From Auanema rhodensis (lineage: Eukaryota; Animalia; Nematoda), in NCBI GenBank assembly GCA_964057225.1, contig OZ059896.1, positions 4,898,001-4,962,000 of the forward strand: a DNA stretch of 64,000 nucleotides, written 5' to 3'. The translations under genes and the position numbers were made by a program. Shown here one piece after another: positions 1 to 64,000 of the stretch. Position 1 is the first letter of the stretch. Each line of letters begins with the position of its first letter. Below the pieces are notes generated by a model, which made no database searches, had not been told where the DNA came from, and was given only the letters and a program-made list of their open reading frames with translations.

Positions 1-3000
1 TAATTAGCATAAATTAAAGTTCACGTAAATTTCAAACTCATGGTTACCATGAACCAATATCAATAAAAATTTGTTTTTAGACTAATATGGACATGGAGAA
101 TCTAATTATGAAAACCGCATCTCTTTATCTTTCACGTGAAGCGAGTTACATACCAAGTGCACATCACGTGTACATTTAATTAGCATAAATTAAAGTTCAC
201 GTAAATTTCAAAGTCATGGTTACCATGCACCAATATCAATAAAATTTTGTTTTTAGACTAATATGGACATGGGGAATCTAATTTTGAAAACCGCATCTCT
301 TTATTCTTCACGTGAAGCGAGTTACATACCAAGTGCACATCACGTGTACATTTAATTAGCATAAATTAAAGTTCACGTAAATTTCAAAGTCATGGTTACC
401 ATGCACCAATATCAATGAAATTTTGTTTTTAGACTAATATGGACATGGGGAATCTAATTTTGAAAACCGCATCTCTTTATCTTTCACGTGAAGCGAGTTA
501 CATACCAAGTGCACATCACGTGTACATTTAATTAGCATAAATTAAAGTTCACGTAAACTTCAAACTCATGGTTACCATACACCAATATCAATAAAAATTT
601 GTTTTTAGAGTAATATGGACATGGAGAATCTATTTTTAAAAACCGCATCTCTTTATCTTTCACGTGAATCGAGTTACATACCAAGTGCACATCACGTGTA
701 CATTTAATTAGCATAAATTAAAGTTCACGTAAATTTCAAACTCATGGTTACCATGCACCAATATCAATAAAAATTTGTTTTTAGACTAATATGGACATGG
801 AGAATCTAATTTTGAAAACCGCATCTCTTTATCTTTCACGTGAAGCGAGTTACATACCAAGTGCACATCACGTGTACATTTAATTAGCATAAATTAAAGT
901 TCACGTAAATTTCAAACTCATGGTTACCATGCACCAATATCAATACAATTTTGTTTTTAGACTAATATGGACATGGGGAATCTAATTTTGAAAACCGCAT
1001 CTCTTTATCTTTCACGTGCGAGTTACATACCAAGTGCACATCACGTGTACATTTAATTAGCATAAATTAAAGTTCACTTAAATTTCAAAGTCATGGTTAC
1101 CATGCACCAATATCAATAAAAATTTGTTTTTAGACTAATATGGACATGGGGAATCTAATTTTCAAAACCGCATCTCTTTATCTTTCACGTGAAGCGAGTT
1201 ACATACCAAGTGCACATCACGTGTACATTTAATTAGCATAAATTAAAGTTCACTTAAATTTGAAAGTCATGGTTACCATGCAGCAATATCAATAAAATTT
1301 TGTTTTTAGACTAATATGGACATGGGGAATCTAATTTTGAAAACCGCATCTCTTTATCTTTCACGTGAAGCGAGTTACATACCAAGTGCACATCCCGTGT
1401 ACATTTAATTAGCATAAATTAAAGTTCACGTAAATTTCAAACTCATGGTTACCATGCACCAATATCAATAAAAATTTGTTTTTAGACTAATATGGACATG
1501 GGGAATCTATATTTGAAAAACGCATCTCTTTATCTTTCACGTGAAGCGAGTTACATACCAAGTGCACATCACGTGTACATTTAATTAGCATAAATCAAAG
1601 TTCACGTAAATTTCAAAGTCATGGTTACCATGCACCAATATCAATAAAATTTTGTTTTTAGACTAATATGGACATGGGGAATCTAATTATGAAAACCGCA
1701 TCTCTTTATCTTTCACGTGAAGCGAGTTACATACCAAGTGCACATCACGTGTACATTTAATTAGCATAAATTAAAGTTCACGTAAATTTCAAAGTCATGG
1801 TTACCATGCACCAATATCAATAAAATTTTGTTTTTAGACTAATATGGACATGGGGAATCTAATTTTGAAAACCGCATCTCTTTATTTTTCACGTGAAGCG
1901 AGTTACATACCAAGTGCACATCACGTGTACATTTAATTAGCATAAATTAAAGTTCACGTAAATTTCAAACTCATGGTTACCATACACCAATATCAATAAA
2001 AATTTGTTTTTAGACTAATATGGACATGGAGAATCTAATTTTAAAAACCGCATCTCTTTATCTTTCACGTGAAGCGAGTTACATACCAAGTGCACATCAC
2101 GTGTACATTTAATTAGCATAAATTAAAGTTCACGTAAATTTCAAAGTCATGGTTACCATGCACCAATATCAATAAAATTTTGTTTTTAGACTAATATGGA
2201 CATGGGGAATCTAATTTTGAAAACCGCATCTCTTTATCTTTCACGTGAAGCGAGTTACATACCAAGTGCACATCACGTGTACATTTAATTAGCATAAATT
2301 AAAGTTCACGTAAATTTCAAACTCATGGTTACCATGCACCAATATCAATAAAAATTTGTTTTTAGACTAATATGGACATGGAGAATCTAATTTTGAAAAC
2401 CGCATCTCTTTATCTTTCACGTGAAGCGAGTTACATACCAAGTGCACATCACGTGTACATTTAATTAGCATAAATTAAAGTTCACGTAAATTTCAAACTC
2501 ATGGTTACCATGCACCAATATCAATAAAAATTTGTTTTTAGAGTAATATGGACATGGAGAATCTATTTTTAAAAACCGCATCTCTTTATCTTTCACGTGA
2601 AGCGAGTTACATACCAAGTGCACATCACGTGTACATTTAATTAGCATAAATTAAAGTTCACGTAAATTTCAAAGTCATGGTTACCATGCACCAATATCAA
2701 TAAAATTTTGTTTTTAGACTAATATGGACATGGGGAATCTAATTTTCAAAACCGCATCTCTTTATCTTTCACGTGAAGCGAGTTACATACCAAGTGCACA
2801 TCACGTGTACATTTAATTAGCATACATTAAAGTTCACTTAAATTTGAAAGTCATGGTTACCATGCAGCAATATCAATAAAAATTTGTTTTTAGACTAATA
2901 TGGACATGGGGAATCTATATTTGAAAAACGCATCTCTTTATCTTTCACGTGAAGCGAGTTACATACCAAGTGCACATCACGTGTACATTTAATTAGCATA

Positions 3001-6000
3001 AATTAAAGTTCACGTAAATTTCAAAGTCATGGTTACCATGCACCAATATCAATAAAATTTTGTTTTTAGACTAATATGGACATGGGGAATCTAATTTTGA
3101 AAACCGCATCTCTTTATCTTTCACGTGAAGCGAGTTACATACCAAGTGCACATCACGTGTACATTTAATTAGCATAAATTAAAGTTCACGTAAATTTCAA
3201 ACTCATGGTTACCATGCACCAATATCAATAAAAATTTGTTTTTAGACTAATATGGACATGGAGAATCTAATTTTGAAAACCGCATCTCTTTATCTTTCAC
3301 GTGAAGCGAGTTACATACCAAGTGCACATCACGTGTACATTTAATTAGCATAAATTAAAGTTCACGTAAATTTCAAACTCATGGTTACCATGCACCAATA
3401 TCAATAAAAATTTGTTTTTAGAGTAATATGGACATGGAGAATCTATTTTTAAAAACCGCATCTCTTTATCTTTCACGTGAAGCGAGTTACATACCAAGTG
3501 CACATCACGTGTACATTTAATTAGCATAAATTAAAGTTCACGTAAATTTCAAACTCATGGTTACCATGCACCAATATCAATAAAATTTTGTTTTTAGACT
3601 AATATGGACATGGGGAATCTAATTTTGAAAACCGCATCTCTTTATCTTTCACGTGAAGCGAGTTACATACCAAGTGCACATCCCGTGTACATTTAATTAG
3701 CATAAATTAAAGTTCACGTAAATTTCAAACTCATGGTTACCATGCACCAATATCAATAAAAATTTGTTTTTAGACTAATATGGACATGGGGAATCTAATT
3801 TTGAAAAACGCATCTCATTATCTTTCACGTGAAGCGAGTTACATACCAAGTGCACATCACGTGTACATTTAATTAGCATAAATTAAAGTTCACGTAAATT
3901 TCAAAGTCATGGTTACCATGCACCAATATCAATAAAATTTTGTTTTTAGACTAATATGGACATGGGGAATCTAATTTTGAGAACCGCATCTCTTTATTTT
4001 TCACGTGAAGCGAGTTACATACCAAGTGCACATCACGTGTACATTTAATTAGCATAAATTAAAGTTCACGTAAATTTCAAACTCATGGTTACCATGCACC
4101 AATATCAATAAAAATTTGTTTTTAGACTAATATGGACATGGAGAATCTAATTTTAAAAACCGCATCTCTTTATCTTTCACGTGAAGCGAGTTACATACCA
4201 AGTGCACATCACGTGTACATTTAATTAGCATAAATTAAAGTTCACGTAAATTTCAAACTCATGGTTACCATGCACCAATATCAATAAAATTTTGTTTTTA
4301 GACTAATATGGACATGGGGAATCTAATTTTGAAAACCGCATCTCTTTATCTTTCACGTGAAGCGAGTTACATACCAAGTGCACATCACGTGTACATTTAA
4401 TTAGCATAAATTAAAGTTCACGTAAATTTCAAACTCATGGTTACCATGCACCAATATCAATAAAAATTTGTTTTTAGACTAATATGGACATGGAGAATCT
4501 AATTTTAAAAACCGCATCTCTTTATCTTTCACGTGAAGCGAGTTACATACCAAGTGCACATCACGTGTACATTTAATTAGCATAAATTAAAGTTCACGTA
4601 AATTTCAAACTCATGGTTACCATGCACCAATATCAATAAAAATTTGTTTTTAGACTAATATGGACATGGAGAATCTATTTTTAAAAACCGCATCTCTTTA
4701 TCTTTCACGTGAAGCGAGTTACATACCAAGTGCACATCACGTGTACATTTAATTAGCATAAATTAAAGTTCACGTAAATTTCAAACTCATGGTTACCATG
4801 CACCAATATCAATAAAAATTTGTTTTTAGACTAATATGGACATGGAGAATCTAATTTTAAAAACCGCATCTCTTTATCTTTCACGTGAAGCGAGTTACAT
4901 ACCAAGTGCACATCACGTGTACATTTAATTAGCATAAATTAAAGTTCACGTAAATTTCAAACTCATGGTTACCATGCACCAATATCAATAAAATTTTGTT
5001 TTTAGACTAATATGGACATGGGGAATCTAATTTTGAAAACCGCATCTCTTTATCTTTCACGTGAAGCGAGTTACATACCAAGTGCACATCACGTGTACAT
5101 TTAATTAGCATAAATTAAAGTTCACGTAAATTTCAAACTCATGGTTACCATGCACCAATATCAATAAAAATTTGTTTTTAGACTAATATGGACATGGAGA
5201 ATCTAATTTTAAAAACCGCATCTCTTTATCTTTCACGTGAAGCGAGTTACATACCAAGTGCACATCACGTGTACATTTAATTAGCATAAATTAAAGTTCA
5301 CGTAAATTTCAAACTCATGGTTACCATGCACCAATATCAATAAAAATTTGTTTTTAGACTAATATGGACATGGAGAATCTATTTTTAAAAACCGCATCTC
5401 TTTATCTTTCACGTGAAGCGAGTTACATACCAAGTGCACATCACGTGTACATTTAATTAGCATAAATTAAAGTTCACGTAAATTTCAAACTCATGGTTAC
5501 CATGCACCAATATCAATAAAAATTTGTTTTTAGACTAATATGGACATGGAGAATCTAATTTTGAAAACCGCATCTCTTTATCTTTCACGTGAAGCGAGTT
5601 ACATACCAAGTGCACATCACGTGTACATTTAATTAGCATAAATTAAAGTTCACGTAAATTTCAAAGTCATGGTTACCATGCACCAATATCAATAAAATTT
5701 TGTTTTTAGACTAATATGGACATGAGGAATCTAATTTTGAAAACCGCATCTCTTTATCTTTCACGTGAAGCGAGTTACATACTAAGTGCACATCACATGT
5801 ACATTTAATTAGCATAAATTAAAGTTCACGTAAATTTCAAACTCATGGTTACCATGCACCAATATCAATAAAAATTTGTTTTTAGACTAATATGGACATG
5901 GAGAATCTAATTTTGAAAACCGCATCTCTTTATCTTTCACGTGAAGCGAGTTACATACCAAGTGCACATCACGTGTACATTTAATTAGCATAAATTAAAG

Positions 6001-9000
6001 TTCACGTAAATTTCAAACTCATGGTTACCATGCACCAATATCAATAAAAATTTGTTTTTAGACTAATATGGACATGGAGAATCTATTTTTAAAAACCGCA
6101 TCTCTTTATCTTTCACGTGAAGCGAGTTACATACCAAGTGCACATCACGTGTACATTTAATTAGCATAAATTAAAGTTCACGTAAATTTCAAACTCATGG
6201 TTACCATGCACCAATATCAATAAAAATTTGTTTTTAGACTAATATGGACATGGGGAATCTAATTTTGAAAACCGCATCTCTTTATCTTCCACGTGAAGCG
6301 AGTTACATACCAAGTGCACATCAAGTGTACATTTAATTAGCATAAATTAAAGTTCACGTAATTTTCAAAGTCATGGTTACCATGCACCAATATCAATAAA
6401 ATTTTGTTTTTAGACTAATATGGACATGGGGAATCTAATTTTGAAAACCGCATCTCTTTATCTTCCACGTGAAGCGAGTTACATACCAAGTGCACATCAA
6501 GTGTACATTTAATTAGCATAAATTAAAGTTCACGTAAATTTCAAAGTCATGGTTACCATGCACCAATATCAATAAAATTTTGTTTTTAGACTAATATGGA
6601 CATGGGGAATCTAATTTTGAAAACCGCATCTCTTTATCTTTCACGTGAAGCGAGTTACATACCAAGTGCACATCACGTGTACATTTAATTAGCATAAATT
6701 AAAGTTCACGTAAATTTCAAACTCATGGTTACCATGCACCAATATCAATAAAAAATTGTTTTTAGACTAATATGGACATGGAGAATCTAATTTTGAAAAC
6801 CGCATCTCTTTATCTTTCACGTGAAGCGAGTTACATACCAAGTGCACATCACGTGTACATTTAATTAGCATAAATTAAAGTTCACGTAAATTTCAAACTC
6901 ATGGTTACCATGCACCAATATCAATAAAAATTTGTTTTTAGACTAATATGGACATGGAGAATCTATTTTTAAAAACCGCATCTCTTTATCTTTCACGTGA
7001 AGCGAGTTACATACCAAGTGCACATCACGTGTACATTTAATTAGCATAAATTAAAGTTCACGTAAATTTCAAACTCATGGTTACCATGCACCAATATCAA
7101 TAAAAATTTGTTTTTAGACTAATATGGACATGGGGAATCTAATTTTGAAAACCGCATCTCTTATCTTCCACGTGAAGCGAGTTACATATCAAGTGCACAT
7201 CACGTGTACATTTAATTAGCATAAATTAAAGTTCACGTAATTTTCAAAGTCATGGTTACCATGAACCAATATCAATGAATATTTGTTTTTTGACTAATAT
7301 GGACATGGGGAATCTAATTTTGAAAACCGCATCTATTTATCTTTCACGCGAAGCGAGTTACATACCAAGTGCACATCACGTGTACATTTAATTAGCATAA
7401 AGTAAAGTTCACGTAAATTTCAAACTCATGGTTACCATGCACCAATATCAATAAAAATTTGTTTTTAGACTAATATGGACATGGAGAATCTAATTTTGAA
7501 AACCGCATCTCTTTATCTTTCACGTGAAGCGAGTTACATACCAAGTGCACATCACGTGTACTTTTAATTAGCATAAATTAAAGTTCACGTAAATTTCAAA
7601 CTCATGGTTACCATGCACCAATATCAATAAAAATTTGTTTTTAGACTAATATGGACATGGGGAATCTAATTTTGAGAACCGCATCTCTTATCTTCCACGT
7701 GAAGCGAGTTACATACCAAGTGCACATCACGTGTACATTTAATTAGCATAAATTAAAGTTCACGTAAATTTCAAAGTCATGGTTACCATGCACCAATATC
7801 AATAAAATTTTGTTTTTAGACTAATATGGACATGGAGAATCTAATTTTAAAAACCGCATCTCTTTATCTTTCACGTGAAGCGAGTTACATACCAAGTGCA
7901 CATCACGTGTACATTTAATTAGCATAAATTAAAGTTCACGTAAATTTCAAACTCATGGTTACCATGCACCAATATCAATAAAATTTTGTTTTTAGACTAA
8001 TATGGACATGGGGAATCTAATTTTGAAAACCGCATCTCTTTATCTTTCACGTGAAGCGAGTTACATACCAAGTGCACATCACGTGTACATTTAATTAGCA
8101 TAAATTAAAGTTCACGTAAATTTCAAACTCATGGTTACCATGCACCAATATCAATAAAAATTTGTTTTTAGACTAATATGGACATGGAGAATCTAATTTT
8201 AAAAACCGCATCTCTTTATCTTTCACGTGAAGCGAGTTACATACCAAGTGCACATCACGTGTACATTTAATTAGCATAAATTAAAGTTCACGTAAATTTC
8301 AAACTCATGGTTACCATGCACCAATATCAATAAAAATTTGTTTTTAGACTAATATGGACATGGAGAATCTATTTTTAAAAACCGCATCTCTTTATCTTTC
8401 ACGTGAAGCGAGTTACATACCAAGTGCACATCACGTGTACATTTAATTAGCATAAATTAAAGTTCACGTAAATTTCAAACTCATGGTTACCATGCACCAA
8501 TATCAATAAAAATTTGTTTTTAGACTAATATGGACATGGAGAATCTAATTTTAAAAACCGCATCTCTTTATCTTTCACGTGAAGCGAGTTACATACCAAG
8601 TGCACATCACGTGTACATTTAATTAGCATAAATTAAAGTTCACGTAAATTTCAAACTCATGGTTACCATGCACCAATATCAATAAAATTTTGTTTTTAGA
8701 CTAATATGGACATGGGGAATCTAATTTTGAAAACCGCATCTCTTTATCTTTCACGTGAAGCGAGTTACATACCAAGTGCACATCACGTGTACATTTAATT
8801 AGCATAAATTAAAGTTCACGTAAATTTCAAACTCATGGTTACCATGCACCAATATCAATAAAAATTTGTTTTTAGACTAATATGGACATGGAGAATCTAA
8901 TTTTAAAAACCGCATCTCTTTATCTTTCACGTGAAGCGAGTTACATACCAAGTGCACATCACGTGTACATTTAATTAGCATAAATTAAAGTTCACGTAAA

Positions 9001-9899
9001 TTTCAAACTCATGGTTACCATGCACCAATATCAATAAAAATTTGTTTTTAGACTAATATGGACATGGAGAATCTATTTTTAAAACCCGCATCTCTTTATC
9101 TTTCACGTGAAGCAAGTTACATACCAAGTGCACATCACGTGTACATTTAATTAGCATAAATTAAAGTTCACGTAAATTTCAAACTCATGGTTACCATGCA
9201 CCAATATCAATAAAAATTTGTTTTTAGACTAATATGGACATGGAGAATCTAATTTTGAAAACCGCATCTCTTTATCTTTCACGTGAAGCGAGTTACATAC
9301 CAAGTGCACATCACGTGTACATTTAATTAGCATAAATTAAAGTTCACGTAAATTTCAAAGTCATGGTTACCATGCACCAATATCAATAAAATTTTGTTTT
9401 TAGACTAATATGGACATGAGGAATCTAATTTTGAAAACCGCATCTCTTTATCTTTCACGTGAAGCGAGTTACATACTAAGTGCACATCACATGTACATTT
9501 AATTAGCATAAATTAAAGTTCACGTAAATTTCAAACTCATGGTTACCATGCACCAATATCAATAAAAATTTGTTTTTAGACTAATATGGACATGGAGAAT
9601 CTAATTTTGAAAACCGCATCTCTTTATCTTTCACGTGAAGCGAGTTACATACCAAGTGCACATCACGTGTACATTTAATTAGCATAAATTAAAGTTCACG
9701 TAAATTTCAAACTCATGGTTACCATGCACCAATATCAATAAAAATTTGTTTTTAGACTAATATGGACATGGAGAATCTATTTTTAAAAACCGCATCTCTT
9801 TATCTTTCACGTGAAGCGAGTTACATACCAAGTGCACATCACGTGTACATTTAATTAGCATAAATTAAAGTTCACGTAAATTTCAAACTCATGGTTACC
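1..9899 (+). repeat. Satellite block 1, forward orientation (~56 monomers, subfamily A)
   Basis: Monomers read TAATTAGCAT...GTGTACATT on the + strand up to ...CTCATGGTTACC at 9899. Confidence 0.98.
4050..9899 (+). repeat. 21-monomer duplication (3694-bp period) containing a nested 4-mer (704 bp) duplication; mirrored at ~9900-16150
   Basis: CATGAGG variant at 5725 and 9419 (difference 3694 = 21x176-2, from two 1-bp deletions near 7160 and 7690); mirror copies at 10828 and 14522. A four-monomer variant pattern occurs twice at ~4050-5455 and again at ~7740-9150. Confidence 0.85.
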
Positions 9900-9910
9900 T
9901 CGCTTCACGT
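9890..9910. other. Orientation-switch junction J1 (forward to inverted)
   Basis: CATGGTTAC[C]TCGCTTCACGT: forward monomer position 47/48 is joined to the reverse complement of position 145/144. One C is shared (9899) and there are no inserted bases. Confidence 0.97.
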
Positions 9911-12900
9911 GAAAGATAAAGAGATGCGGTTTTCAAAATTAGATTCCCCATGTCCATATTAGTCTAAAAACAAAATTTTATTGATATTGGTGCATGGTAA
10001 CCATGACTTTGAAATTTACGTGAACTTTAATTTATGCTAATTAAATGTACACTTGATGTGCACTTGGTATGTAACTCGCTTCACGTGGAAGATAAAGAGA
10101 TGCGGTTTTCAAAATTAGATTCCCCATGTCCATATTAGTCTAAAAACAAAATTTTATTGATATTGGTGCATGGTAACCATGACTTTGAAAATTACGTGAA
10201 CTTTAATTTATGCTAATTAAATGTACACTTGATGTGCACTTGGTATGTAACTCGCTTCACGTGGAAGATAAAGAGATGCGGTTTTCAAAATTAGATTCCC
10301 CATGTCCATATTAGTCTAAAAACAAATTTTTATTGATATTGGTGCATGGTAACCATGAGTTTGAAATTTACGTGAACTTTAATTTATGCTAATTAAATGT
10401 ACACGTGATGTGCACTTGGTATGTAACTCGCTTCACGTGAAAGATAAAGAGATGCGGTTTTTAAAAATAGATTCTCCATGTCCATATTAGTCTAAAAACA
10501 AATTTTTATTGATATTGGTGCATGGTAACCATGAGTTTGAAATTTACGTGAACTTTAATTTATGCTAATTAAATGTACACGTGATGTGCACTTGGTATGT
10601 AACTCGCTTCACGTGAAAGATAAAGAGATGCGGTTTTCAAAATTAGATTCTCCATGTCCATATTAGTCTAAAAACAAATTTTTATTGATATTGGTGCATG
10701 GTAACCATGAGTTTGAAATTTACGTGAACTTTAATTTATGCTAATTAAATGTACATGTGATGTGCACTTAGTATGTAACTCGCTTCACGTGAAAGATAAA
10801 GAGATGCGGTTTTCAAAATTAGATTCCTCATGTCCATATTAGTCTAAAAACAAAATTTTATTGATATTGGTGCATGGTAACCATGACTTTGAAATTTACG
10901 TGAACTTTAATTTATGCTAATTAAATGTACACGTGATGTGCACTTGGTATGTAACTCGCTTCACGTGAAAGATAAAGAGATGCGGTTTTCAAAATTAGAT
11001 TCTCCATGTCCATATTAGTCTAAAAACAAATTTTTATTGATATTGGTGCATGGTAACCATGAGTTTGAAATTTACGTGAACTTTAATTTATGCTAATTAA
11101 ATGTACACGTGATGTGCACTTGGTATGTAACTCGCTTCACGTGAAAGATAAAGAGATGCGGTTTTTAAAAATAGATTCTCCATGTCCATATTAGTCTAAA
11201 AACAAATTTTTATTGATATTGGTGCATGGTAACCATGAGTTTGAAATTTACGTGAACTTTAATTTATGCTAATTAAATGTACACGTGATGTGCACTTGGT
11301 ATGTAACTCGCTTCACGTGAAAGATAAAGAGATGCGGTTTTTAAAATTAGATTCTCCATGTCCATATTAGTCTAAAAACAAATTTTTATTGATATTGGTG
11401 CATGGTAACCATGAGTTTGAAATTTACGTGAACTTTAATTTATGCTAATTAAATGTACACGTGATGTGCACTTGGTATGTAACTCGCTTCACGTGAAAGA
11501 TAAAGAGATGCGGTTTTCAAAATTAGATTCCCCATGTCCATATTAGTCTAAAAACAAAATTTTATTGATATTGGTGCATGGTAACCATGAGTTTGAAATT
11601 TACGTGAACTTTAATTTATGCTAATTAAATGTACACGTGATGTGCACTTGGTATGTAACTCGCTTCACGTGAAAGATAAAGAGATGCGGTTTTTAAAATT
11701 AGATTCTCCATGTCCATATTAGTCTAAAAACAAATTTTTATTGATATTGGTGCATGGTAACCATGAGTTTGAAATTTACGTGAACTTTAATTTATGCTAA
11801 TTAAATGTACACGTGATGTGCACTTGGTATGTAACTCGCTTCACGTGAAAGATAAAGAGATGCGGTTTTTAAAAATAGATTCTCCATGTCCATATTAGTC
11901 TAAAAACAAATTTTTATTGATATTGGTGCATGGTAACCATGAGTTTGAAATTTACGTGAACTTTAATTTATGCTAATTAAATGTACACGTGATGTGCACT
12001 TGGTATGTAACTCGCTTCACGTGAAAGATAAAGAGATGCGGTTTTTAAAATTAGATTCTCCATGTCCATATTAGTCTAAAAACAAATTTTTATTGATATT
12101 GGTGCATGGTAACCATGAGTTTGAAATTTACGTGAACTTTAATTTATGCTAATTAAATGTACACGTGATGTGCACTTGGTATGTAACTCGCTTCACGTGA
12201 AAGATAAAGAGATGCGGTTTTCAAAATTAGATTCCCCATGTCCATATTAGTCTAAAAACAAAATTTTATTGATATTGGTGCATGGTAACCATGAGTTTGA
12301 AATTTACGTGAACTTTAATTTATGCTAATTAAATGTACACGTGATGTGCACTTGGTATGTAACTCGCTTCACGTGAAAGATAAAGAGATGCGGTTTTTAA
12401 AATTAGATTCTCCATGTCCATATTAGTCTAAAAACAAAATTTTATTGATATTGGTGCATGGTAACCATGACTTTGAAATTTACGTGAACTTTAATTTATG
12501 CTAATTAAATGTACACGTGATGTGCACTTGGTATGTAACTCGCTTCACGTGGAAGATAAGAGATGCGGTTCTCAAAATTAGATTCCCCATGTCCATATTA
12601 GTCTAAAAACAAATTTTTATTGATATTGGTGCATGGTAACCATGAGTTTGAAATTTACGTGAACTTTAATTTATGCTAATTAAAAGTACACGTGATGTGC
12701 ACTTGGTATGTAACTCGCTTCACGTGAAAGATAAAGAGATGCGGTTTTCAAAATTAGATTCTCCATGTCCATATTAGTCTAAAAACAAATTTTTATTGAT
12801 ATTGGTGCATGGTAACCATGAGTTTGAAATTTACGTGAACTTTACTTTATGCTAATTAAATGTACACGTGATGTGCACTTGGTATGTAACTCGCTTCGCG

Positions 12901-21900: not shown

Positions 21901-22349
21901 TATAGATTCCCCATGTCCATATTAGTCTAAAAACAAATTTTTATTGATATTGGTGCATGGTAACCATGAGTTTGAAATTTACGTGAACTTTAATTTATGC
22001 TAATTAAATGTACACGGGATGTGCACTTGGTATGTAACTCGCTTCACGTGAAAGATAAAGAGATGCGGTTTTCAAAATTAGATTCCCCATGTCCATATTA
22101 GTCTAAAAACAAAATTTTATTGATATTGCTGCATGGTAACCATGACTTTCAAATTTAAGTGAACTTTAATTTATGCTAATTAAATGTACACGTGATGTGC
22201 ACTTGGTATGTAACTCGCTTCACGTGGAAGATAAAGAGATGCGGTTTTGAAAATTAGATTCCCCATGTCCATATTAGTCTAAAAACAAATTTTTATTGAT
22301 ATTGGTGCATGGTAACCATGACTTTGAAATTTACGTGAACTTTAATTTA

Positions 22350-41800: not shown

Positions 41801-42949
41801 TTAGTCTAAAAACAAATTTTTATTGATATTGGTGCATGGTAACCATGACTTTGAAATTTACGTGAACTTTAATTTATGCTAATTAAATGTACACGTGATG
41901 TGCACTTGGTATGTAACTCGCTTCACGTGAAAGATAAAGAGATGCGGTTTTCAAAATTAGATTCCCCATGTCCATATTAGTCTAAAAACAAATTTTTATT
42001 GATATTGGTTCATGGTAACCATGACTTTGAAATTTACGTGAACTTTAATTTATGCTAATTAAATGTACACGTGATGTGCACTTGGTATGTAACTCGCTTC
42101 ACGTGAAAGATAAAGAGATGCGGTTTTCATAATTAGATTCCCCATGTCCATATTAGTCTAAAAACAAAATTTTATTGATATTGGTGCATGGTAACCATGA
42201 CTTTGAAATTTACGTGAACTTTAATTTATGCTAATTAAATGTACACGTGATGTGCACTTGGTATGTAACTCGCTTCACGTGAAAGATAAAGAGATGACGT
42301 TTTCAAAATTAGATTCCCCATGTCCATATTAGTCTAAAAACAAATTTTTATTGATATTGGTGCATGGTAACCATGACTTTGAAATTTACGTGAACTTTAA
42401 TTTATGCTAATTAAATGTACACGTGATGTGCACTTGGTATGTAACTCGCTTCACGTGAAAGATAAAGAGATGCGGTTTTCAAAATTAGATTCCCCATGTC
42501 CATATTAGTCTAAAAACAAATTTTTATTGATATTGGTTCATGGTAATCATGACTTTGAAATTTACGTGAACTTTAATTTATTCTAATTAAATGTACACGT
42601 GATGTGCACTTGGTATGTAACTCGCTTCACGTGAAAGATAAAGAGATGCGGTTTTCAAAATTAGATTCACCATGTCCATATTAGTCTAAAAACAAATTTT
42701 TATTGATATTGGTGCATGGTAACCATGACTTTGAAATTTACGTGAACTTTAATTTATGCTAATTAAATGTACACGTGATGTGCACTTGGTATGTAACTCG
42801 CTTCACGTGAAATATAAAGAGATGCGGTTTTCAAAATTAGATTCCCCATGTCCATATTAGTCTAAAAACAAATTTTTATTGATATTGGTTCATGGTAACC
42901 ATGACTTTGAAATTTACGTGAACTTTAATTTATGCTAATTAAATGTACA

Positions 42950-51500: not shown

Positions 51501-53910
51501 TATTGATATTGGTTAATGGTAACCATGACTTTGAAATTTACGTGAACTTTAATTTATGCTAAATAAATGTACACGTGATGTGCACCTGGAATGTAACTCG
51601 CTTCACGTGAAAGATAAAGAGATGCGGTTTTCAAAATTAGATTCCCCATGTCCATATTAGTCTAAAAACAAATTTTTATTGATATTGGTTCATGCTAACC
51701 ATGACTTTGAAATTTACGTGAACTTTAATTTATGCTAATTGAATGTACACGTGATGTGCACTTGGTATGTAACTCGCTTCACGTGAAAGATAAAGAGATG
51801 CGGTTTTCGAAATTAGATTCCCCATGTCCATATTAGTCTAAAAACAAATTTTTATTGATATTGGTGCATGGTAACCATGACTTTGAAATTTACGTGAACT
51901 TTAATTTATGCTAATTAAATGTACACGTGATGTGCACTTGGTATGTAACTCGCTTCACGTGAAAGATAAAGAGATGCGGTTTTCAAAATTAGATTCCCCA
52001 TGTCCATATTAGTCTAAAAACAAATTTTTATTGATATTGGTTCATGGTAACCATGACTTTGAAATTTACGTGAACTTTAATTTATGCTAATTAAATGTAC
52101 ACGTGATGTGCACTTGGTATGTAACTCGCTTCACGTGAAAGATAAAGAGATGCGGTTTTCAAAATTAGATTCCCCATGTCCATATTAGTCTAAAAACAAA
52201 TTGTTATTGATATTGGTGCATGGTAACCATGACTTTGAAATTTACGTGAACTTTAATTTATGCTAATTAAATGTACACGTGATGTGCACTTGGTATGTAA
52301 CTCGCTTCACGTGAAAGATAAAGAGATGCGGTTTTCAAAATTAGATTCCCCATGTCCATATTAGTCTAAAAACAAATTTTTATTGATATTGGTTCATGGT
52401 AATCATGACTTTGAAATTTACTTGAACTTTAATTTATTCTAATTAAATGTACACGTGATGTGCACTTGGTATGTAACTCGCTTCACGTGAAAGATAAAGA
52501 GATGCGGTTTTCAAAATTAGATTCACCATGTCCATATTAGTCTAAAAACAAATTTTTATTGATATTGGTGCATGGTAACCATGACTTTGAAATTTACGTG
52601 AACTTTAATTTATGCTAATTAAATGTACACGTGATGTGCACTTGGTATGTAACTCGCTTCACGTGAAATATAAAGAGATGCGGTTTTCAAAATTAGATTC
52701 CCCATGTCCATATTAGTCTAAAAACAAATTTTTATTGATATTGGTTCATGGTAACCATGACTTTGAAATTTACGTGAACTTTAATTTATGCTAATTAAAT
52801 GTACACGTGATGTGCACTTGGTATGTAACTCGCTTCACGTGAAAGATAAAGAGATGCGGTTTTCAAAATTAGATTCCCCATGTCCATATTAGTCTAAAAA
52901 CAAATTTTTATTGATATTGGTTCATGGTAACCATGACTTTGAAATTTACGTGAACTTTAATTTATGCTAATTAAATGTACACGTGATGTGCACTTGGTAT
53001 GTAACTCGCCTCACGTGAAAGATAAAGAGATGCGGTTTGCAAAATTAGATTCCCCATGTCCATATTAGTCTGAAAACAAATTTTTATTGATATTGGTTCA
53101 TGGTAACCATGACTTTGAAATTTACGTGAACTTTAATTTATGCTAAATAAATGTACACGTGATGTGCACCTGGAATGTAACTCGCTTCACGTGAAAGATA
53201 AAGAGATGCGGTTTTCAAAATTAGATTCCCCATGTCCATATTAGTCTAAAAACAAATTTTTATTGATATTGGTTCATGCTAACCATGACTTTGAAATTTA
53301 CGTGAACTTTACTTTATGCTAATTAAATGTACACGTGATGTGCACTTGGTATGTAACTCGCTTCGCGTGAAAGATAAATAGATGCGGTTTTCAAAATTAG
53401 ATTCCCCATGTCCATATTAGTCTAAAAACAAATTTTTATTGATATTGGTTCATGGTAACCATGACTTTGAAATTTACGTGAACTTTAATTTATGCTAATT
53501 AAATGTACACGTGATGTGCACTTGGTATGTAACTCGCTTCACGTGAAAGATAAAGAGATGCGGTTTTCAAAATTAGATTCCCCATGTCCATATTAGTCTA
53601 AAAACAAATTTTTATTGATATTGGTTCATGGTAACCATGACTTTGAAATTTACGTGAACTTTAATTTATGCTAATTAAATGTACACGTGATGTGCACTTG
53701 GTATGTAACTCGCCTCACGTGAAAGATAAAGAGATGCGGTTTGCAAAATTAGATTCCCCATGTCCATATTAGTCTAAAAACAAATTTTTATTGATATTGG
53801 TTCATGGTAACCATGACTTTGAAATTTACGTGAACTTTAATTTATGCTAAATAAATGTACACGTGATGTGCACTTGGTATGTAACTCGCTTCACGTGAAA
53901 GATAAAGAGA

Positions 53911-53935
53911 TGCGGTTTTTAAAGCGAGTTACATA
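53911..53935. other. Orientation-switch junction J2 (inverted to forward)
   Basis: TGCGGTTTTTA[AA]GCGAGTTACATA: the inverted monomer ends at position 107-109 and the forward monomer resumes at 139-141, with a 2-nt AA overlap (53922-53923). Confidence 0.97.
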
Positions 53936-56900
53936 CCAAGTGCACATCACGTGTACATTTAATTAGCATAAATTAAAGTTCACGTAAATTTCAAAGTCAT
54001 GGTTACCATGCACCAATATCAATAAAAATTTGTTTTTAGACTAATATGGACATGGGGAATCTAATTTTGAAAACGTCATCTCTTTTTCTTTCACGTGAAG
54101 CGAGTTACATAAGAAGTGCACATCACGTGTACATTTAATTAGCATAAATTAAAGTTCACGTAAATTTCAAAGTCATGGTTACCATGAACCAATATCAATA
54201 AAAATTTGTTTTTAGACTAATATGGACATGGGGAATCTAATTTTGAAAACCGCATCTCTTTATCTTTCACGTGAAGCGAGTTACATACCAAGTGCACATC
54301 ACGTGTACATTTAATTAGCATAAATTAAAGTTCACGTAAATTTCAAAGTCATGGTTACCATGCACCAATATCAATAAAAATTTGTTTTTAGACTAATATG
54401 GACATGGGGAATCTAATTTTGAAAACGTCATCTCTTTATCTTCCACGTGAAGCGAGTTACATACCAAGTGCACATCACGTGTACATTTAATTAGCATAAA
54501 TTAAAGTTCACGTAAATTTCAAAGTCATGGTTACCATGAACCAATATCAATAAAAATTTGTTTTTAGACTAATATGGACATGGGGAATCTAATTTTGAAA
54601 ACCGCATCTCTTTATCTTTCACGTGAAGCGAGTTACATACCAAGTGCACATCACGTGTACATTTAATTAGCATAAATTAAAGTTCACGTAAATTTCAAAG
54701 TCATGGTTACCATGCACCAATATCAATAAAAATTCGTTTTTAGACTAATATGGACATGGGGAATCTAATTTCGAAAACCGCATCTCTTTATCTTTCACGT
54801 GAAGCGAGTTACATACCAAGTGCACATCACGTGTACATTCAATTAGCATAAATTAAAGTTCACGTAAATTTCAAAGTCATGATTACCATACACCAATATC
54901 AATAAAAATTTGTTTTTAGACTAATATGGACATGGGGAATCTAATTTTGAAAACCGCATCTCTTTATCTTTCACGTGAAGCGAGTTACATTCCAGGTGCA
55001 CATCACGTGTACATTTATTTAGCATAAATTAAAGTTCACGTAAATTTCAAAGTCATGGTTACCATGAACCAATATCAATAAAAATTTGTTTTTAGACTAA
55101 TATGGACATGGGGAATCTAATTTTGCAAACCGCATCTCTTTATCTTTCACGTGAGGCGAGTTACATACCAAGTGCACATCACGTGTACATTTAATTAGCA
55201 TAAATTAAAGTTCACGTAAATTTCAAAGTCATGGTTACCATGAACCAATATCAATAAAAATTTGTTTTTAGACTAATATGGACATGGGGAATCTAATTTT
55301 GAAAACCGCATCTCTTTATCTTTCACGTGAAGCGAGTTACATACCAAGTGCACATCACGTGTACATTTAATTAGCATAAATTAAAGTTCACGTAAATTTC
55401 AAAGTCATGGTTACCATGAACCAATATCAATAAAAATTTGTTTTTAGACTAATATGGACATGGGGAATCTAATTTTGAAAACCGCATCTATTTATCTTTC
55501 ACGCGAAGCGAGTTACATACCAAGTGCACATCACGTGTACATTTAATTAGCATAAAGTAAAGTTCACGTAAATTTCAAAGTCATGGTTAGCATGAACCAA
55601 TATCAATAAAAATTTGTTTTTAGACTAATATGGACATGGGGAATCTAATTTTGAAAACCGCATCTCTTTATCTTTCACGTGAAGCGAGTTACATTCCAGG
55701 TGCACATCACGTGTACATTTATTTAGCATAAATTAAAGTTCACGTAAATTTCAAAGTCATGGTTACCATGAACCAATATCAATAAAAATTTGTTTTTAGA
55801 CTAATATGGACATGGGGAATCTAATTTTGCAAACCGCATCTCTTTATCTTTCACGTGAGGCGAGTTACATACCAAGTGCACATCACGTGTACATTTAATT
55901 AGCATAAATTAAAGTTCACGTAAATTTCAAAGTCATGGTTACCATGAACCAATATCAATAAAAATTTGTTTTTAGACTAATATGGACATGGGGAATCTAA
56001 TTTTGAAAACCGCATCTCTTTATCTTTCACGTGAAGCGAGTTACATACCAAGTGCACATCACGTGTACATTTAATTAGCATAAATTAAAGTTCACGTAAA
56101 TTTCAAAGTCATGGTTACCATGAACCAATATCAATAAAAATTTGTTTTTAGACTAATATGGACATGGGGAATCTAATTTTGAAAACCGCATCTCTTTATA
56201 TTTCACGTGAAGCGAGTTACATACCAAGTGCACATCACGTGTACATTTAATTAGCATAAATTAAAGTTCACGTAAATTTCAAAGTCATGGTTACCATGCA
56301 CCAATATCAATAAAAATTTGTTTTTAGACTAATATGGACATGGTGAATCTAATTTTGAAAACCGCATCTCTTTATCTTTCACGTGAAGCGAGTTACATAC
56401 CAAGTGCACATCACGTGTACATTTAATTAGAATAAATTAAAGTTCAAGTAAATTTCAAAGTCATGATTACCATGAACCAATATCAATAAAAATTTGTTTT
56501 TAGACTAATATGGACATGGGGAATCTAATTTTGAAAACCGCATCTCTTTATCTTTCACGTGAAGCGAGTTACATACCAAGTGCACATCACGTGTACATTT
56601 AATTAGCATAAATTAAAGTTCACGTAAATTTCAAAGTCATGGTTACCATGCACCAATATCAATAACAATTTGTTTTTAGACTAATATGGACATGGGGAAT
56701 CTAATTTTGAAAACCGCATCTCTTTATCTTTCACGTGAAGCGAGTTACATACCAAGTGCACATCACGTGTACATTTAATTAGCATAAATTAAAGTTCACG
56801 TAAATTTCAAAGTCATGGTTACCATGAACCAATATCAATAAAAATTTGTTTTTAGACTAATATGGACATGGGGAATCTAATTTTGAAAACCGCATCTCTT

Positions 56901-59900
56901 TATCTTTCACGTGAAGCGAGTTACATACCAAGTGCACATCACGTGTACATTTAATTAGCATAAATTAAAGTTCACGTAAATTTCAAAGTCATGGTTACCA
57001 TGCACCAATATCAATAAAAATTTGTTTTTAGACTAATATGGACATGGGGAATCTAATTTCGAAAACCGCATCTCTTTATCTTTCACGTGAAGCGAGTTAC
57101 ATACCAAGTGCACATCACGTGTACATTCAATTAGCATAAATTAAAGTTCACGTAAATTTCAAAGTCATGGTTAGCATGAACCAATATCAATAAAAATTTG
57201 TTTTTAGACTAATATGGACATGGGGAATCTAATTTTGAAAACCGCATCTCTTTATCTTTCACGTGAAGCGAGTTACATTCCAGGTGCACATCACGTGTAC
57301 ATTTATTTAGCATAAATTAAAGTTCACGTAAATTTCAAAGTCATGGTTACCATTAACCAATATCAATAAAAATTTGTTTTTAGACTAATATGGACATGGG
57401 GAATCTAATTTTGCAAACCGCATCTCTTTATCTTTCACGTGAAGCGAGTCACATACCAAGTGCACATCACGTGTACATTCAATTAGCATAAATTAAAGTT
57501 CACGTAAATTTCAAAGTCATGGTTACCATGCACCAATATCAATAAAAATTTGTTTTTAGACTAATATGAACATGGGGAATCTAGTTTTGAAAACCGCATC
57601 TCTTTATCTTCCACGTGAAGCGAGTTACATACCAAGTGCACATCACGTGTACATTTAATTAGCATAAATTAAAGTTCACGTAATTTTCAAAGTCATGGTT
57701 ACCATGAACCAATATCAATAAAAATTTGTTTTTAGACTAATATGGACATGGGGAATCTAATTTTGAAAACCGCATCTATTTATCTTTCACGCGAAGCGAG
57801 TTACATACCAAGTGCACATCACGTGTACATTTAATTAGCATAAAGTAAAGTTCACGTAAATTTCAAAATCATGGTTACCATGAACCAATATCAATAAAAA
57901 TTTGTTTTTAGACTCATATGGACATGGGGAATCTAATTTTGAAAACCGCATCTCTTTATCTTTCACGTGAGGCGAGTTACATACCAAGTGCACATCACGT
58001 GTACATTTAATTAGCATAAGTTAAAGTTCACGTAAATTTCAAAGTCATGGTTACCATGCACCAATATCAATAAAAATTTGTTTTTAGACTAATATGGACA
58101 TGGGGAATCTAATTTTGAAAACCGCATCTCTTTATCTTTCACGTGAAGCGAGTTACATACCAAGTGCACATCACGTGTACATTTAATTAGCATAAATTAA
58201 AGTTCACGTAAATTTCAAAGTCATGGTTAGCATGAACCAATATCAATAAAAATTTGTTTTTAGACTAATATGGACATGGGGAATCCAATTTTGAAAACGT
58301 CATCTCTTTATCTTTCACGTGAAGCGAGTTACATACCAAGTGCACATCACGTGTACATTTAATTAGCATAAATTAAAGTTCACGTAAATTTCAAAGTCAT
58401 GGTTACCATGAACCAATATCAATAAAAATTTGTTTTTAGACTAATATGGACATGGGGAATCTAATTTTGAAAACCGCATCTCTTTATCTTTCACGTGAAG
58501 CGAGTTACATACCAAGTGCACATCACGTGTACATTTAATTAGCATAAATTAAAGTTCACGTAAATTTCAAAGTCATGGTTACCATGCACCAATATCAATA
58601 AAAATTTGTTTTTAGACTAATATGGACATGGGGAATCTAATTTTGAAAACGTCATCTCTTTTTCTTTCACGTGAAGCGAGTTACATAAGAAGTGCACATC
58701 ACGTGTACATTTAATTAGCATAAATTAAAGTTCACGTAAATTTCAAAGTCATGGTTACCATGAACCAATATCAATAAAAATTTGTTTTTAGACTAATATG
58801 GACATGGGGAATCTAATTTTGAAAACCGCATCTCTTTATCTTTCACGTGAAGCGAGTTACATACCAAGTGCACATCACGTGTACATTTAATTAGCATAAA
58901 TTAAAGTTAACGTAAATTTCAAAGTCATGGTTACCATGCACCAATATCAATAAAAATTTGTTTTTAGACTAATATGGACATGGGGAATCTAATTTTGAAA
59001 ACGTCATCTCTTTATCTTTCACGTGAAGCGAGTTACATACCAAGTGCACATCACGTGTACATTTAATTAGCATAAATTAAAGTTCACGTAAATTTCAAAG
59101 TCATGGTTACCATGAACCAATATCAATAAAAATTTGTTTTTAGACTAATATGGACATGGGGAATCTAATTTTGAAAACCGCATCTCTTTATCTTTCACGT
59201 GAAGCGAGTTACATTCCAGGTGCACATCACGTGTACATTTATTTAGCATAAATTAAAGTTCACGTAAATTTCAAAGTCATGGTTACCATGAACCAATATC
59301 AATAAAAATTTGTTTTTAGACTAATATGGACATGGGGAATCTAATTTTGCAAACCGCATCTCTTTATCTTTCACGTGAGGCGAGTTACATACCAAGTGCA
59401 CATCACGTGTACATTTAATTAGCATAAATTAAAGTTCACGTAAATTTCAAAGTCATGGTTACCATGAACCAATATCAATAAAAATTTGTTTTTAGACTAA
59501 TATGGACATGGGGAATCTAATTTTGAAAACCGCATCTCTTTATCTTTCACGTGAAGCAAGTTACATACCAAGTGCACATCACGTGTACATTTAATTAGCA
59601 TAAATTAAAGTTCACGTAAATTTCAAAGTCATGGTTACCATGAACCAATATCAATAAAAATTTGTTTTTAGACTAATATGGACATGGGGAATCTAATTTT
59701 GAAAACCGCATCTTTTTATATTTCACGTGAAGCGAGTTACATACCAAGTGCACATCACGTGTACATTTAATTAGCATAAATTAAAGTTAACGTAAATTTC
59801 AAAGTCATGGTTACCATGCACCAATATCAATAAAAATTTGTTTTTAGACTAATATGGACATGGTGAATCTAATTTTGAAAACCGCATCTCTTTATCTTTC

Positions 59901-62900
59901 ACGTGAAGCGAGTTACATACCAAGTGCACATCACGTGTACATTTAATTAGAATAAATTAAAGTTCACGTAAATTTCAAAGTCATGATTACCATGAACCAA
60001 TATCAATAAAAATTTGTTTTTAGACTAATATGGACATGGGGAATCTAATTTTGAAAACCGCATCTCTTTATCTTTCACGTGAAGCGAGTTACATACCAAG
60101 TGCACATCACGTGTACATTTAATTAGCATAAATTAAAGTTCACGTAAATTTCAAAGTCATGGTTACCATGCACCAATATCAATAAAAATTTGTTTTTAGC
60201 CTAATATGGACATGGGGAATCTAATTTTGAAAACCACATCTCTTTATCTTTCACGTGAAGCGAGTTACATACCAAGTGCACATCACGTGTACATTTAATT
60301 AGCATAAATTAAAGTTCACGTAAATTTCAAAGTCATGGTTACCATGAACCAATATCAATAAAAATTTGTTTTTAGACTAATATGGACATGAGGAATCTAA
60401 TTTTGAAAACCGCATCTCTTCATCTTTCACGTGAAGCGAGTTACATACCAAGTGCACATCACGTGTACATTTAATTAGCATAAATTAAAGTTCACGTAAA
60501 TTTCAAAGTCATGGTTACCATGCACCAATATCAATAAAAATTTGTTTTTAGACTAATATGGACATGGGGAATCTAATTTCGAAAACCGCATCTCTTTATC
60601 TTTCACGTGAAGCGAGTTACATACCAAGTGCACATCACGTGTACATTCAATTAGCATAAATTATAGTTCACGTAAATTTCAAAGTCATGGTTAGCATGAA
60701 CCAATATCAATAAAAATTTGTTTTTAGACTAATATGGACATGGGGAATCTAATTTTGAAAACCGCATCTCTTTATCTTTCACGTGAAGCGAGTTACATTC
60801 CAGGTGCACATCACGTGTACATTTATTTAGCATAAATTAAAGTTCACGTAAATTTCAAAGTCATGGTTACCATGAACCAATATCAATAAAAATTTGTTTT
60901 TAGACTAATATGGACATGGGGAATCTAATTTTGCAAACCGCATCTCTTTATCTTTCACGTGAAGCGAGTCACATACCAAGTGCACATCACGTGTACATTC
61001 AATTAGCATAAATTAAAGTTCACGTAAATTTCAAAGTCATGGTTACCATGCACCAATATCAATAAAAATTTGTTTTTAGACTAATATGAACATGGGGAAT
61101 CTAATTTTGAAAACCGCATCTCTTTATCTTCCACGTGAAGCGAGTTACATACCAAGTGCACATCACGTGTACATTTAATTAGCATAAATTAAAGTTCACG
61201 TAATTTTCAAAGTCATGGTTACCATGAACCAATATCAATAAAAATTTGTTTTTAGACTAATATGGACATGGGGAATCTAATTTTGAAAACCGCATCTATT
61301 TATCTTTCACGCGAAGCGAGTTACATACCAAGTGCACATCACGTGTACATTTAATTAGCATAAAGTAAAGTTCACGTAAATTTCAAAATCATGGTTACCA
61401 TGAACCAATATCAATAAAAATTTGTTTTTAGACTAATATGGACATGGGGAATCTAATTTCGAAAACCGCATCTCTTTATCTTTCACGTGAAGCGAGTTAC
61501 ATACCAAGTGCACATCACGTGTACATTCAATTAGCATAAATTAAAGTTCACGTAATTTTCAAAGTCATGGTTACCATGCACCAATATCAATAAAAATTTG
61601 TTTTTAGACTAATATGGACATGGGGAATCTAATTTTGAATACCGCATCTCTTTATCTTTCACGTGAAGCGAGTTACATACCAAGTGCACATCACGTGTAC
61701 ATTTAATTAGCATAAATTAAAGTTCACTTAAATTTCAAAGTCATGGTTACCATGCATCAATATCAATAAAATTTTGTTTTTAGACTAATATGGACATGGG
61801 GAATCTAATTTTGAAAACCGCATCTCTTTATCTTTCACGTGAAGCGAGTTACATACCAAGTGCACATCACGTGTACATTTAATTAGCATAAATTAAAGTT
61901 CACGTAAATTTCAAAGTCATGGTTAGCATGAACCAATATCAATAAAAATTTGTTTTTAGACTAATATGGACATGGGGAATCTAATTTTGAAAACGTCATC
62001 TCTTTATCTTTCACGTGAAGCGAGTTACATACCAAGTGCACATCACGTGTACATTTAATTAGCATAAATTAAAGTTCACGTAAATTTCAAAGTCATGGTT
62101 ACCATGAACCAATATCAATAAAAATTTGTTTTTAGACTAATATGGACATGGGGAATCTAATTTTGAAAACCGCATCTCTTTATCTTTCACGTGAAGCGAG
62201 TTACATACCAAGTGCACATCACGTGTACATTTAATTAGCATAAATTAAAGTTCACGTAAATTTCAAAGTCATGGTTACCATGCACCAATATCAATAAAAA
62301 TTTGTTTTTAGACTAATATGGACATGGGGAATCTAATTTTGAAAACGTCATCTCTTTATCTTTCACGTGAAGCGAGTTACATACCAAGTGCACATCACGT
62401 GTACATTTAATTAGCATAAATTAAAGTTCACGTAAATTTCAAAGTCATGGTTACCATGAACCAATATCAATAAAAATTTGTTTTTAGACTAATATGGACA
62501 TGGGGAATCTAATTTTGAAAACCGCATCTCTTTATCTTTCACGTGAAGCGAGTTACATACCAAGTGCACATCACGTGTACATTTAATTAGCATAAATTAA
62601 AGTTCACGTAAATTTCAAAGTCATGGTTACCATGCACCAATATCAATAAAAATTCGTTTTTCGACTAATATGGACATGGGGAATCTAATTTCGAAAACCG
62701 CATCTCTTTATCTTTCACGTGAAGCGAGTTACATACCAAGTGCACATCACGTGTACATTCAATTAGCATAAATTAAAGTTCACGTAAATTTCAAAGTCAT
62801 GATTACCATACACCAATATCGATAAAAATTTGTTTTTAGACTAATATGGACATGGGGAATCTAATTTTGAAAACCGCATCTCTTTATCTTTCATGTGAAG

Positions 62901-64000
62901 CGAGTTACATTCCAGGTGCACATCACGTGTACATTTATTTAGCATAAATTAAAGTTCACGTAAATTTCAAAGTCATGGTTACCATGAACCAATATCAATA
63001 AAAATTTGTTTTTAGACTAATATGGACATGGGGAATCTAATTTTGCAAACCGCATCTCTTTATCTTTCACGTGAGGCGAGTTACATACCAAGTGCACATC
63101 ACGTGTACATTTAATTAGCATAAATTAAAGTTCACGTAAATTTCAAAGTCATGGTTACCATGAACCAATATCAATAAAAATTTGTTTTTAGACTAATATG
63201 GACATGGGGAATCTAATTTTGAAAACCGCATCTCTTTATCTTTCACGTGAAGCGAAATACATACCAAGTGCACATCACGTGTACATTTAATTAGCATAAA
63301 TTAAAGTTCACGTAAATTTCAAAGTCATGGTTACCATGCACCAATATCAATAAAAATTTGTTTTTAGACTAATATGGACATGGGGAATCTAATTTCGAAA
63401 ACCGCATCTCTTTATCTTTCACGTGAAGCGAGTTACATACCAAGTGCACATCACGTGTACATTCAATTAGCATAAATTATAGTTCACGTAAATTTCAAAG
63501 TCATGGTTAGCATGAACCAATATCAATAAAAATTTGTTTTTAGACTAATATGGACATGGGGAATCTAATTTTGAAAACCGCATCTCTTTATCTTTCACGT
63601 GAAGCGAGTTACATTCCAGGAGCACATCACGTGTACATTTATTTAGCATAAATTAAAGTTCACGTAAATTTCAAAGTCATGGTTACCATGAACCAATATC
63701 AATAAAAATTTGTTTTTAGACTAATATGGACATGGGGAATCTAATTTTGCAAACCGCATCTCTTTATCTTTCACGTGAAGCGAGTCACATACCAAGTGCA
63801 CATCACGTGTACATTCAATTAGCATAAATTAAAGTTCACGTAAATTTCAAAGTCATGGTTACCATGCACCAATATCAATAAAAATTTGTTTTTAGACTAA
63901 TATGAACATGGGGAATCTAATTTTGAAAACCGCATCTCTTTATCTTCCACGTGAAGCGAGTTACATACCAAGTGCACATCACGTGTACATTTAATTAGCA
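53924..64000 (+). repeat. Satellite block 3, forward orientation (~57 monomers, subfamily B)
   Basis: Forward monomers resume at (AA)GCGAGTTACATACCAAG and run to the end of the window. Confidence 0.98.

Follow-up and report, generated by a model that had tools for sequence, protein, structure and literature searches.

By what route does a satellite array come to read in alternating directions? This question is raised by a 64-kb stretch of the nematode Auanema rhodense (C4:4,898,001-4,962,000, hereafter the window), the whole of which is an unbroken array of a 176-bp satellite with a GC content of 32%. C4 is a 23.6-Mb contig within a genome of 180,911,798 bp. The germline assembly of A. rhodense APS4 (180.9 Mb) was generated from PacBio HiFi reads with hifiasm, and somatic cells of this species eliminate about 61% of the genome, mostly terminal tandem arrays (preprint 10.64898/2026.08.27.747507). 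Since the array belongs to multi-megabase terminal tandem arrays that lie beside a second satellite, as in the published genome, it is probably a germline-restricted autosomal terminal repeat of this species. The chromosome that carries it is presumably holocentric.

The growth of satellite arrays is usually ascribed to unequal exchange. A first-pass annotation of the window had instead proposed an inverted triplication, produced by two inverted template switches, as a route of array expansion different from unequal crossover. We analyzed the window together with 100 kb of flanking DNA on each side, i.e., 264 kb in total, which contain 0 Ns. All coordinates are window positions, with negative values upstream of window position 1, and unit coordinates are positions in F2, the rightmost of the copies described below. 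The wider claim, that the array grew by a route other than unequal crossover, survives. Rather than three copies, there are four in alternating orientation plus a short stub, and the locus provides a base-resolved natural example of a strand-reversing quadruplication. It is likely that about 48 kb of ancestral sequence from the left edge of the array were amplified into these copies by serial fold-backs, with a net array gain of about 128 kb.

Two fold-back junctions inside the window

According to the GC skew and strand-specific anchors, the orientation of the array switches at two sites in the window, 9899/9900 (J1, forward to inverted) and 53,922/53,923 (J2, inverted to forward). Long inverted k-mer matches were concentrated on two anti-diagonals with centres at 10,123.5 and 54,522.5, and these carried 2-3 times as many 201-mers as any shifted anti-diagonal.

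At J1, the arms 639-9899 and 10,348-19,608 mirror each other with only 4 mismatches in 9,261 bp and without a gap; beyond them, the register is shifted by one monomer. They are separated by an unpaired spacer of exactly 448 bp (9900-10,347, inverted; 2.5 monomers) that is contiguous with the inverted block R2. When the junction was aligned to both parental sequences in F2, a microhomology of 1 bp (C) was found. The junction 40-mer had one match in a pattern search of the entire 181-Mb genome. The J1 spacer itself is also present in F2, at 101,335-101,782, and is absent from F1, the forward block to the left of J1. The 2-kb tile starting at 10,001 is 100% identical to 99,682-101,681.

At J2, the inner parts of the arms (51,306-53,922 and 54,947-57,563) differ by 4 mismatches after a shift of one monomer, and the outer parts (45,045-51,044 and 58,001-64,000) by 4 mismatches in 6 kb. 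Here the spacer comprises 1,024 bp (53,923-54,946, forward), is contiguous with F2 and occurs a single time; its closest match elsewhere in the 264 kb reaches only 98.9%. The microhomology is 2 bp (AA), and the junction 37-mer is unique genome-wide. Three mismatches to the mirror partner are clustered at 53,874-53,920 on the inverted strand, within the final 49 bp of the R2 arm, as compared to only one in the preceding 2.6 kb (51,306-53,873). This cluster looks like a junction-proximal scar and resembles the outcome of error-prone or multi-step copying at the switch.

Typing of the monomers revealed that J1 is flanked on both sides by A-type and J2 on both sides by B-type monomers. These results bear out the first-pass annotation in several respects: it had described forward flanks that mirror the adjacent ends of the inverted block, spacers of 448 bp and about 1 kb, and one subfamily on either side of each junction. 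The spacers are indeed located at fold-back junctions. It had also argued that the arrangement is not a simple inversion, and we agree: an inversion of 44 kb would not turn the flanks into mirror images of the block ends next to them, and R2 is mirrored over its full length in both directions, giving three copies (forward, inverted, forward) of one segment of about 44-47 kb.

Four copies of one segment in alternating orientation

When the flanks were included, the order of blocks from left to right was found to be: 351-bp satellite, F0, J-1, R1, J0, F1, J1, R2, J2, and F2 with the remaining array (F, forward; R, inverted). F2 spans 53,923-101,782 (47.9 kb), and its first 10 kb (53,923-64,000) are in the window. 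Beyond the end of F2 at 101.8 kb, the array keeps its forward orientation at least up to 164 kb, and none of the amplified blocks contains a near-identical copy of this downstream part. R2 (9900-53,922) comprises 44.0 kb with 249 full monomers, represents a copy of F2 54,947-101,782 in reverse complement, and diverges from F1 by 0.07% and from F2 by 0.08%. F1 (-36,610 to 9899; 46.5 kb, C4:4,861,390-4,907,899) extends into the window with its final 9.9 kb (1-9899), and is 99.9-100% identical to R2, in mirror order, and to F2, in direct order. All three span unit positions 55.2-101.3 kb at 99.9% identity. The fourth copy, R1, is inverted and comprises 36.3 kb (-72,894 to -36,611). It is preceded by the forward stub F0, which adjoins J-1, measures 1.33 kb and abuts the 351-bp satellite at -74,256/-74,255. 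Along the unit, the copy number is 1, 2, 3, 4, 5, 3, 2, 1.

Part of this arrangement had been predicted from the window. As expected, the forward array upstream mirrors the rest of the inverted block, down to -36.6 kb, and a zone with a 25-mer period comes first, followed by B-type monomers from about -21.6 kb (predicted: about 20 kb upstream). Downstream, subfamily A reappears at about 68.5 kb (predicted: 68.3 kb). Mirror identity that ends just outside the window would have pointed away from an amplified segment; instead, the identity continues well beyond it.

The two junctions outside the window are of the same kind. J0 (-36,610; C4:4,861,390) joins R1 to F1 and has its axis in a CACGTG, with one additional monomer on the forward side and a scar in the form of a 6-bp insertion (CGTACG) about 18 bp from the axis. 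J-1 (approximately -72.9 kb; C4 approximately 4,825,090) joins F0 to R1 at an AAATTT. The spacers at J-1, J0, J1, and J2 measure 34, 176, 448, and 1,024 bp and the microhomologies 6, 6, 1, and 2 bp, respectively. Genome-wide, the J0 junction word and the word that spans the join of the 351-bp and 176-bp satellites each had a single occurrence; for J0, J1, and J2, both strands were checked.

Matches of this quality are not typical of the array. In 2-kb tiles, the copies match each other at 99.8-100%, whereas unrelated parts of the array usually reach 98-99.5% at best. Because of this difference and the excess of 201-mers on the anti-diagonals, a chance origin of the copy matches is excluded. 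A few young direct duplications elsewhere in the array reach 99.9-100%. For example, in the downstream array the segments 104,001-106,000 and 109,100-111,099, which are 5.1 kb apart, are 100% identical, indicating that ordinary duplication of tandem segments is active in this array as well.

The number of copies was also assessed with a 40-mer marker from the zone beyond the reach of R1, and exactly three matches were found genome-wide, in F1, R2, and F2. Two other 40-mers with four local occurrences were rejected as markers of the unit, as they have 7,058 and 595 matches in the genome. Likewise, CACGTG was rejected as a recurrent fold-back site, because the palindromic 28-mer of the J0 axis is found only at J0 genome-wide when one mismatch is allowed. 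A further candidate, in which J-1 is a mirror copy of J1 and R1 a shortened mirror of F1 plus J1, fails because J-1 and J1 have different junction sequences and no second J1 word exists in the genome on either strand.

The direct offsets between R1 and R2 (about 89.6 kb) and between F1 and F2 (about 91.4 kb) superficially resemble the duplication of an R-F unit, that is, a palindrome followed by a tandem duplication of about 90 kb through unequal crossover. However, such a duplication requires J0 and J2 to be identical, and these differ in breakpoint, spacer and microhomology, with both words being unique. Nor does it account for the distance of only 448 bp, in unit coordinates, between the ends that meet at J1. 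Neither this scenario nor a simple inversion has any realistic chance of being correct, as the junction sequences already refute them.

The inverted triplication proposed for the window fares better, but only in part. Three copies with an inverted one in the middle are indeed present, but R1 and F0 are there too, and the junctions are four in number. The proposal that they stem from a single event with two template switches referred to two known types of rearrangement, duplication-inverted triplication-duplication (DUP-TRP/INV-DUP), reportedly described by Carvalho et al. in 2011, and origin-dependent inverted-repeat amplification (ODIRA), the inverted triplication of yeast that is said to go back to Brewer et al. 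Both predict exactly three copies, a left copy that is continuous with unamplified sequence, and an inter-breakpoint stretch at J2 that is present twice. At this locus, F2 does continue into the unamplified downstream array, but F1 stops at J0, where it is preceded by the inverted R1, and the J2 spacer occurs once. A single two-switch event of this type therefore does not account for the locus.

Relationship and age of the copies

The array was split into 1,350 monomers (235 distinct sequences), and the copies were aligned monomer by monomer. Pairwise divergence among the four copies was 0.04-0.12%. None of the 185 monomer columns common to all of them showed a 2:2 pattern, and every difference was private to one copy. 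This star-shaped tree indicates that the four copies arose close together in time. J-1, J0, J1, and J2 together represent one four-copy amplification of a single unit.

In the shared 32.6 kb, we counted 15 private substitutions in R1, 9 in R2, 5 in F2, and 2 in F1. The variant monomers are nearly all unique within the 238-kb array, and all but one are substitutions; the private variants look like new mutations and not like conversions or homopolymer errors. In addition, tandem monomers were gained privately in F1 (+11 and +8), F2 (+18 and +2), R1 (+13), and R2 (+5). Examples of such gains are located at about 80.7-85 kb in F2, at about -62 to -64 kb in R1, and at about -28 kb and -17 kb in F1. 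Since each copy has its own substitutions and its own monomer gains, the copies are distinct loci and not a duplicated consensus. An apparent deletion of 20 monomers common to F1 and R2, which would have suggested a palindrome of a palindrome with R1F1 mirroring R2F2, turned out to be an alignment artefact caused by different private tandem duplications in F2 and R1.

These differences also bear on the quality of the assembly. The inverted blocks could have been created by hifiasm mis-joins in a homogeneous satellite or by chimeric palindromic reads. No read-level support for the junctions was obtained, and the HiFi coverage of the germline-restricted repeats is only about 29-fold (preprint 10.64898/2026.08.27.747507). 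We nevertheless consider an artefact very unlikely. The sequence is free of Ns across the 264 kb, and the junctions have asymmetric spacers of 34-1,024 bp accompanied by microhomology, a 6-bp insertion and a mismatch cluster, whereas chimeric reads with a missing adapter yield perfect palindromes without a spacer. Furthermore, every copy carries private substitutions and private gains of monomer blocks, and the differences between copies are substitutions, not homopolymer errors. The longest stretch of identity between any two copies is 6.9 kb; typical HiFi reads are longer than this, so reads can separate the copies.

The change per copy since the amplification amounts to about 2.4 x 10^-4 per site. 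With an assumed mutation rate of a few 10^-9 per generation, the amplification would date back on the order of 10^5 generations. It is recent relative to the divergence of 1-2% between neighbouring segments of the array. Four copies this young serve as an internal clock: since the amplification, about 31 substitutions have accumulated, compared to about 10 events in which 1-18 monomers were gained or lost in tandem, so that the rates of point change and of monomer-block change in a satellite can be compared directly.

Proposed serial fold-back and related processes

All four junctions join a copy to its own reverse complement, at a distance of 34-1,024 bp in a unit of about 47,000 bp. Reverse-complement joins at nearly the same point are the signature of a fold-back and not of a tandem duplication or an inversion. 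F2 is taken to be the original, since it is the sole holder of the J2 spacer and the sole copy running into unduplicated array. As the J1 spacer is present in R2 and F2 and missing from F1, F1 was made from R2 or at least after it. On the F2 scale, the turning points on the left are located at 53,923 (F2), 54,947 (R2), 55,180 (F1), and 55,356 (R1). Within the unit, J0 and J2 are thus only 0.2-0.4 kb apart, and an unrelated break would fall this near in fewer than about 3% of cases.

From the geometry, the junction sequences, the copy identities and the star-like relationship, we infer a direction, an order and an enzymology of the process. The ancestral array would have broken near 53.9 kb, and a fold-back at the break (J2) would have produced R2. 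The new end at 101.8 kb would then have folded back in turn (J1), giving rise to F1. Copying or breakage may have turned again 0.2-0.4 kb from the position of J2 (J0), producing R1, and a final turn (J-1) would have left the stub of 1.3 kb, joined to the 351-bp satellite. The turns could represent successive cycles of breakage, fold-back and replication, similar to breakage-fusion-bridge (BFB) cycles, which would be tolerable on a holocentric chromosome, or one replicative chain of template switches. The star tree fits both rapid cycles and a single event. A template-switch chain would agree with the even number of strand switches and with the last join, to the 351-bp satellite, whereas the stepwise copy number (1-2-3-4-5-3-2-1) suits BFB.

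The proximity of J0 and J2 could be explained in three ways. A BFB-type cycle may have copied through J2, with the mirror junction being remodelled thereafter. Alternatively, this mirror junction was perhaps fragile and underwent a second break and fold-back. The third option is a replicative chain with two turns at one barrier, e.g., a broken template end.

This proximity is also relevant to a different history, in which a replicative event with two switches made F1-R2-F2, and a later, separate break and fold-back in F1 made J0, R1, J-1, and F0. The common span of F1, R2, and F2 (55.2-101.3 kb) and their private counts (2, 9, and 5) fit a simultaneous origin of these three, and the longer branch of R1 (15) could mean that it originated separately. 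On the other hand, the later break would have hit about 0.2 kb from the end of R2 (55,180 compared to 54,947), a coincidence for which this history offers no explanation. Moreover, an R1 copied later from F1 should share the changes of F1, and no pattern of R1 and F1 against R2 and F2 was observed, while the longer branch of R1 indicates an older and not a younger copy. We therefore regard a triplication followed by a separate fold-back as unlikely.

Several observations weigh against serial fold-back as well. First, the private substitutions are unequal among the copies (R1 15, F1 2; p approximately 0.01). R1 has about three times as many as the other copies, and the inverted copies have 24 compared to 7 in the forward ones. 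Such an imbalance is expected neither from a simple clock nor from uniformly error-prone copying, and a clock would make R1 the oldest copy, in conflict with the order derived from the spacers. The excess in R1 could possibly be due to error-prone copying or to copying from a slightly different homologue. Second, later BFB cycles are expected to leave exact mirror copies of earlier junctions, but the J0, J1, and J2 words are unique on both strands. J0 is not an exact mirror of J2, and a pure BFB cycle through J2 needs an additional remodelling step; J0 may be a remodelled or re-broken copy of the J2 mirror. Third, the account is based on the 264 kb examined, and it is possible that more copies lie to the left in the 351-bp satellite or more switches further to the right. 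Finally, no public read or contig was shown to span any junction. Two words sampled from the 60 bp around J1 were not listed for any public run. In four runs from three studies, no piece bridging J2 was found within ±1 kb of it; Logan contigs on the satellite are only about 60 bp long, and just 5.5% of the 31-mers in this interval are locus-specific.

Among known processes, fold-back inverted duplication and BFB come closest, as known from human constitutional inverted duplications, fold-back inversions in cancer and hairpin-capped breaks in yeast. The locus shares with them the head-to-head copies, a short single-copy spacer, inverted microhomology of 1-6 bp, the alternating orientation and the stepped copy number. 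In human fold-back inverted duplications, spacers range from 766 bp to 70 kb and microhomologies from 2 to 8 bp (PMC3907307). The sizes found here are similar, with spacers at or below the short end of the range. Unlike these systems, our locus is not situated at a terminal deletion but 4.9 Mb from the end of a presumably holocentric nematode chromosome, within a homogeneous satellite. In addition, the last end is joined to another satellite instead of a telomere, and, as mentioned above, J0 does not mirror J2 exactly.

With DUP-TRP/INV-DUP and ODIRA, the locus has in common the forward-inverted-forward core, two strand-switch junctions and a right copy that runs into unamplified sequence. It differs from both in having four copies plus a stub, a left copy bounded by a fold-back, and a J2 spacer region that is present once and not twice. 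Unlike in DUP-TRP/INV-DUP, there are no pre-existing long inverted repeats at the junctions. ODIRA junctions are short pre-existing inverted repeats, in an amplicon that contains a replication origin. J0 (CACGTG with a loop of one monomer) and J-1 (AAATTT with a 34-bp loop) fit such a short inverted repeat with a small loop, but J1 and J2 do not: spacers of 448 and 1,024 bp with a microhomology of 1-2 bp are not short, closely spaced inverted repeats.

Chromoanasynthesis and chains of microhomology-mediated break-induced replication (MMBIR) resemble the locus in that several junctions occur within 176 kb, with microhomology, a small insertion and point changes near the junctions, and in that the original direction is regained after an even number of strand switches. 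In contrast to these chains, the reversals are nearly exact and remain over one template segment instead of jumping among dispersed templates, with segment lengths of tens of kb.

The class of mechanism is thus well known; what is new is an unusually clean example from a satellite that is probably germline-restricted and lies on a presumably holocentric chromosome. As such arrays are discarded in body cells, they may be a good system in which to study the repair of broken or stalled DNA in unselected, holocentric, germline-only chromatin. A bolder reading is that satellite arrays in germline-only DNA grow mainly by a replicative zig-zag. One copying strand would pass repeatedly over a template of about 45 kb, being turned near a fixed barrier at the edge of the array, and about 130 kb would be gained in a single event. 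If true, arrays in DNA that the soma later loses would expand chiefly through strand-reversing replication and less through unequal crossover. We consider this generalization doubtful.

The left end of the array was also inspected. The boundary between the two satellites (-74,256/-74,255; C4:4,823,744/745) is a sharp join and may be the healing junction of the amplification. The 351-bp satellite flips strand at about -78,380 (C4:4,819,620), 4.1 kb before the 176-bp array begins. This flip was considered as part of the amplification and rejected: its arms are 98.5% alike compared to a background of 97.4-97.9%, so it is older or unrelated.

One contig from a public run joins telomere repeats, (GCCTAA)n, directly to the 176-bp satellite, in the monomer phase of position 54,816, and its position within the array is ambiguous. 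This contig may represent a natural chromosome end or satellite DNA to which a telomere was newly added. Along C4, a satellite 40-mer lies on the plus strand at 5,582-878,374 and on the minus strand at 5,985,704-6,135,855, indicating that more strand switches are present on this chromosome outside the region studied here.

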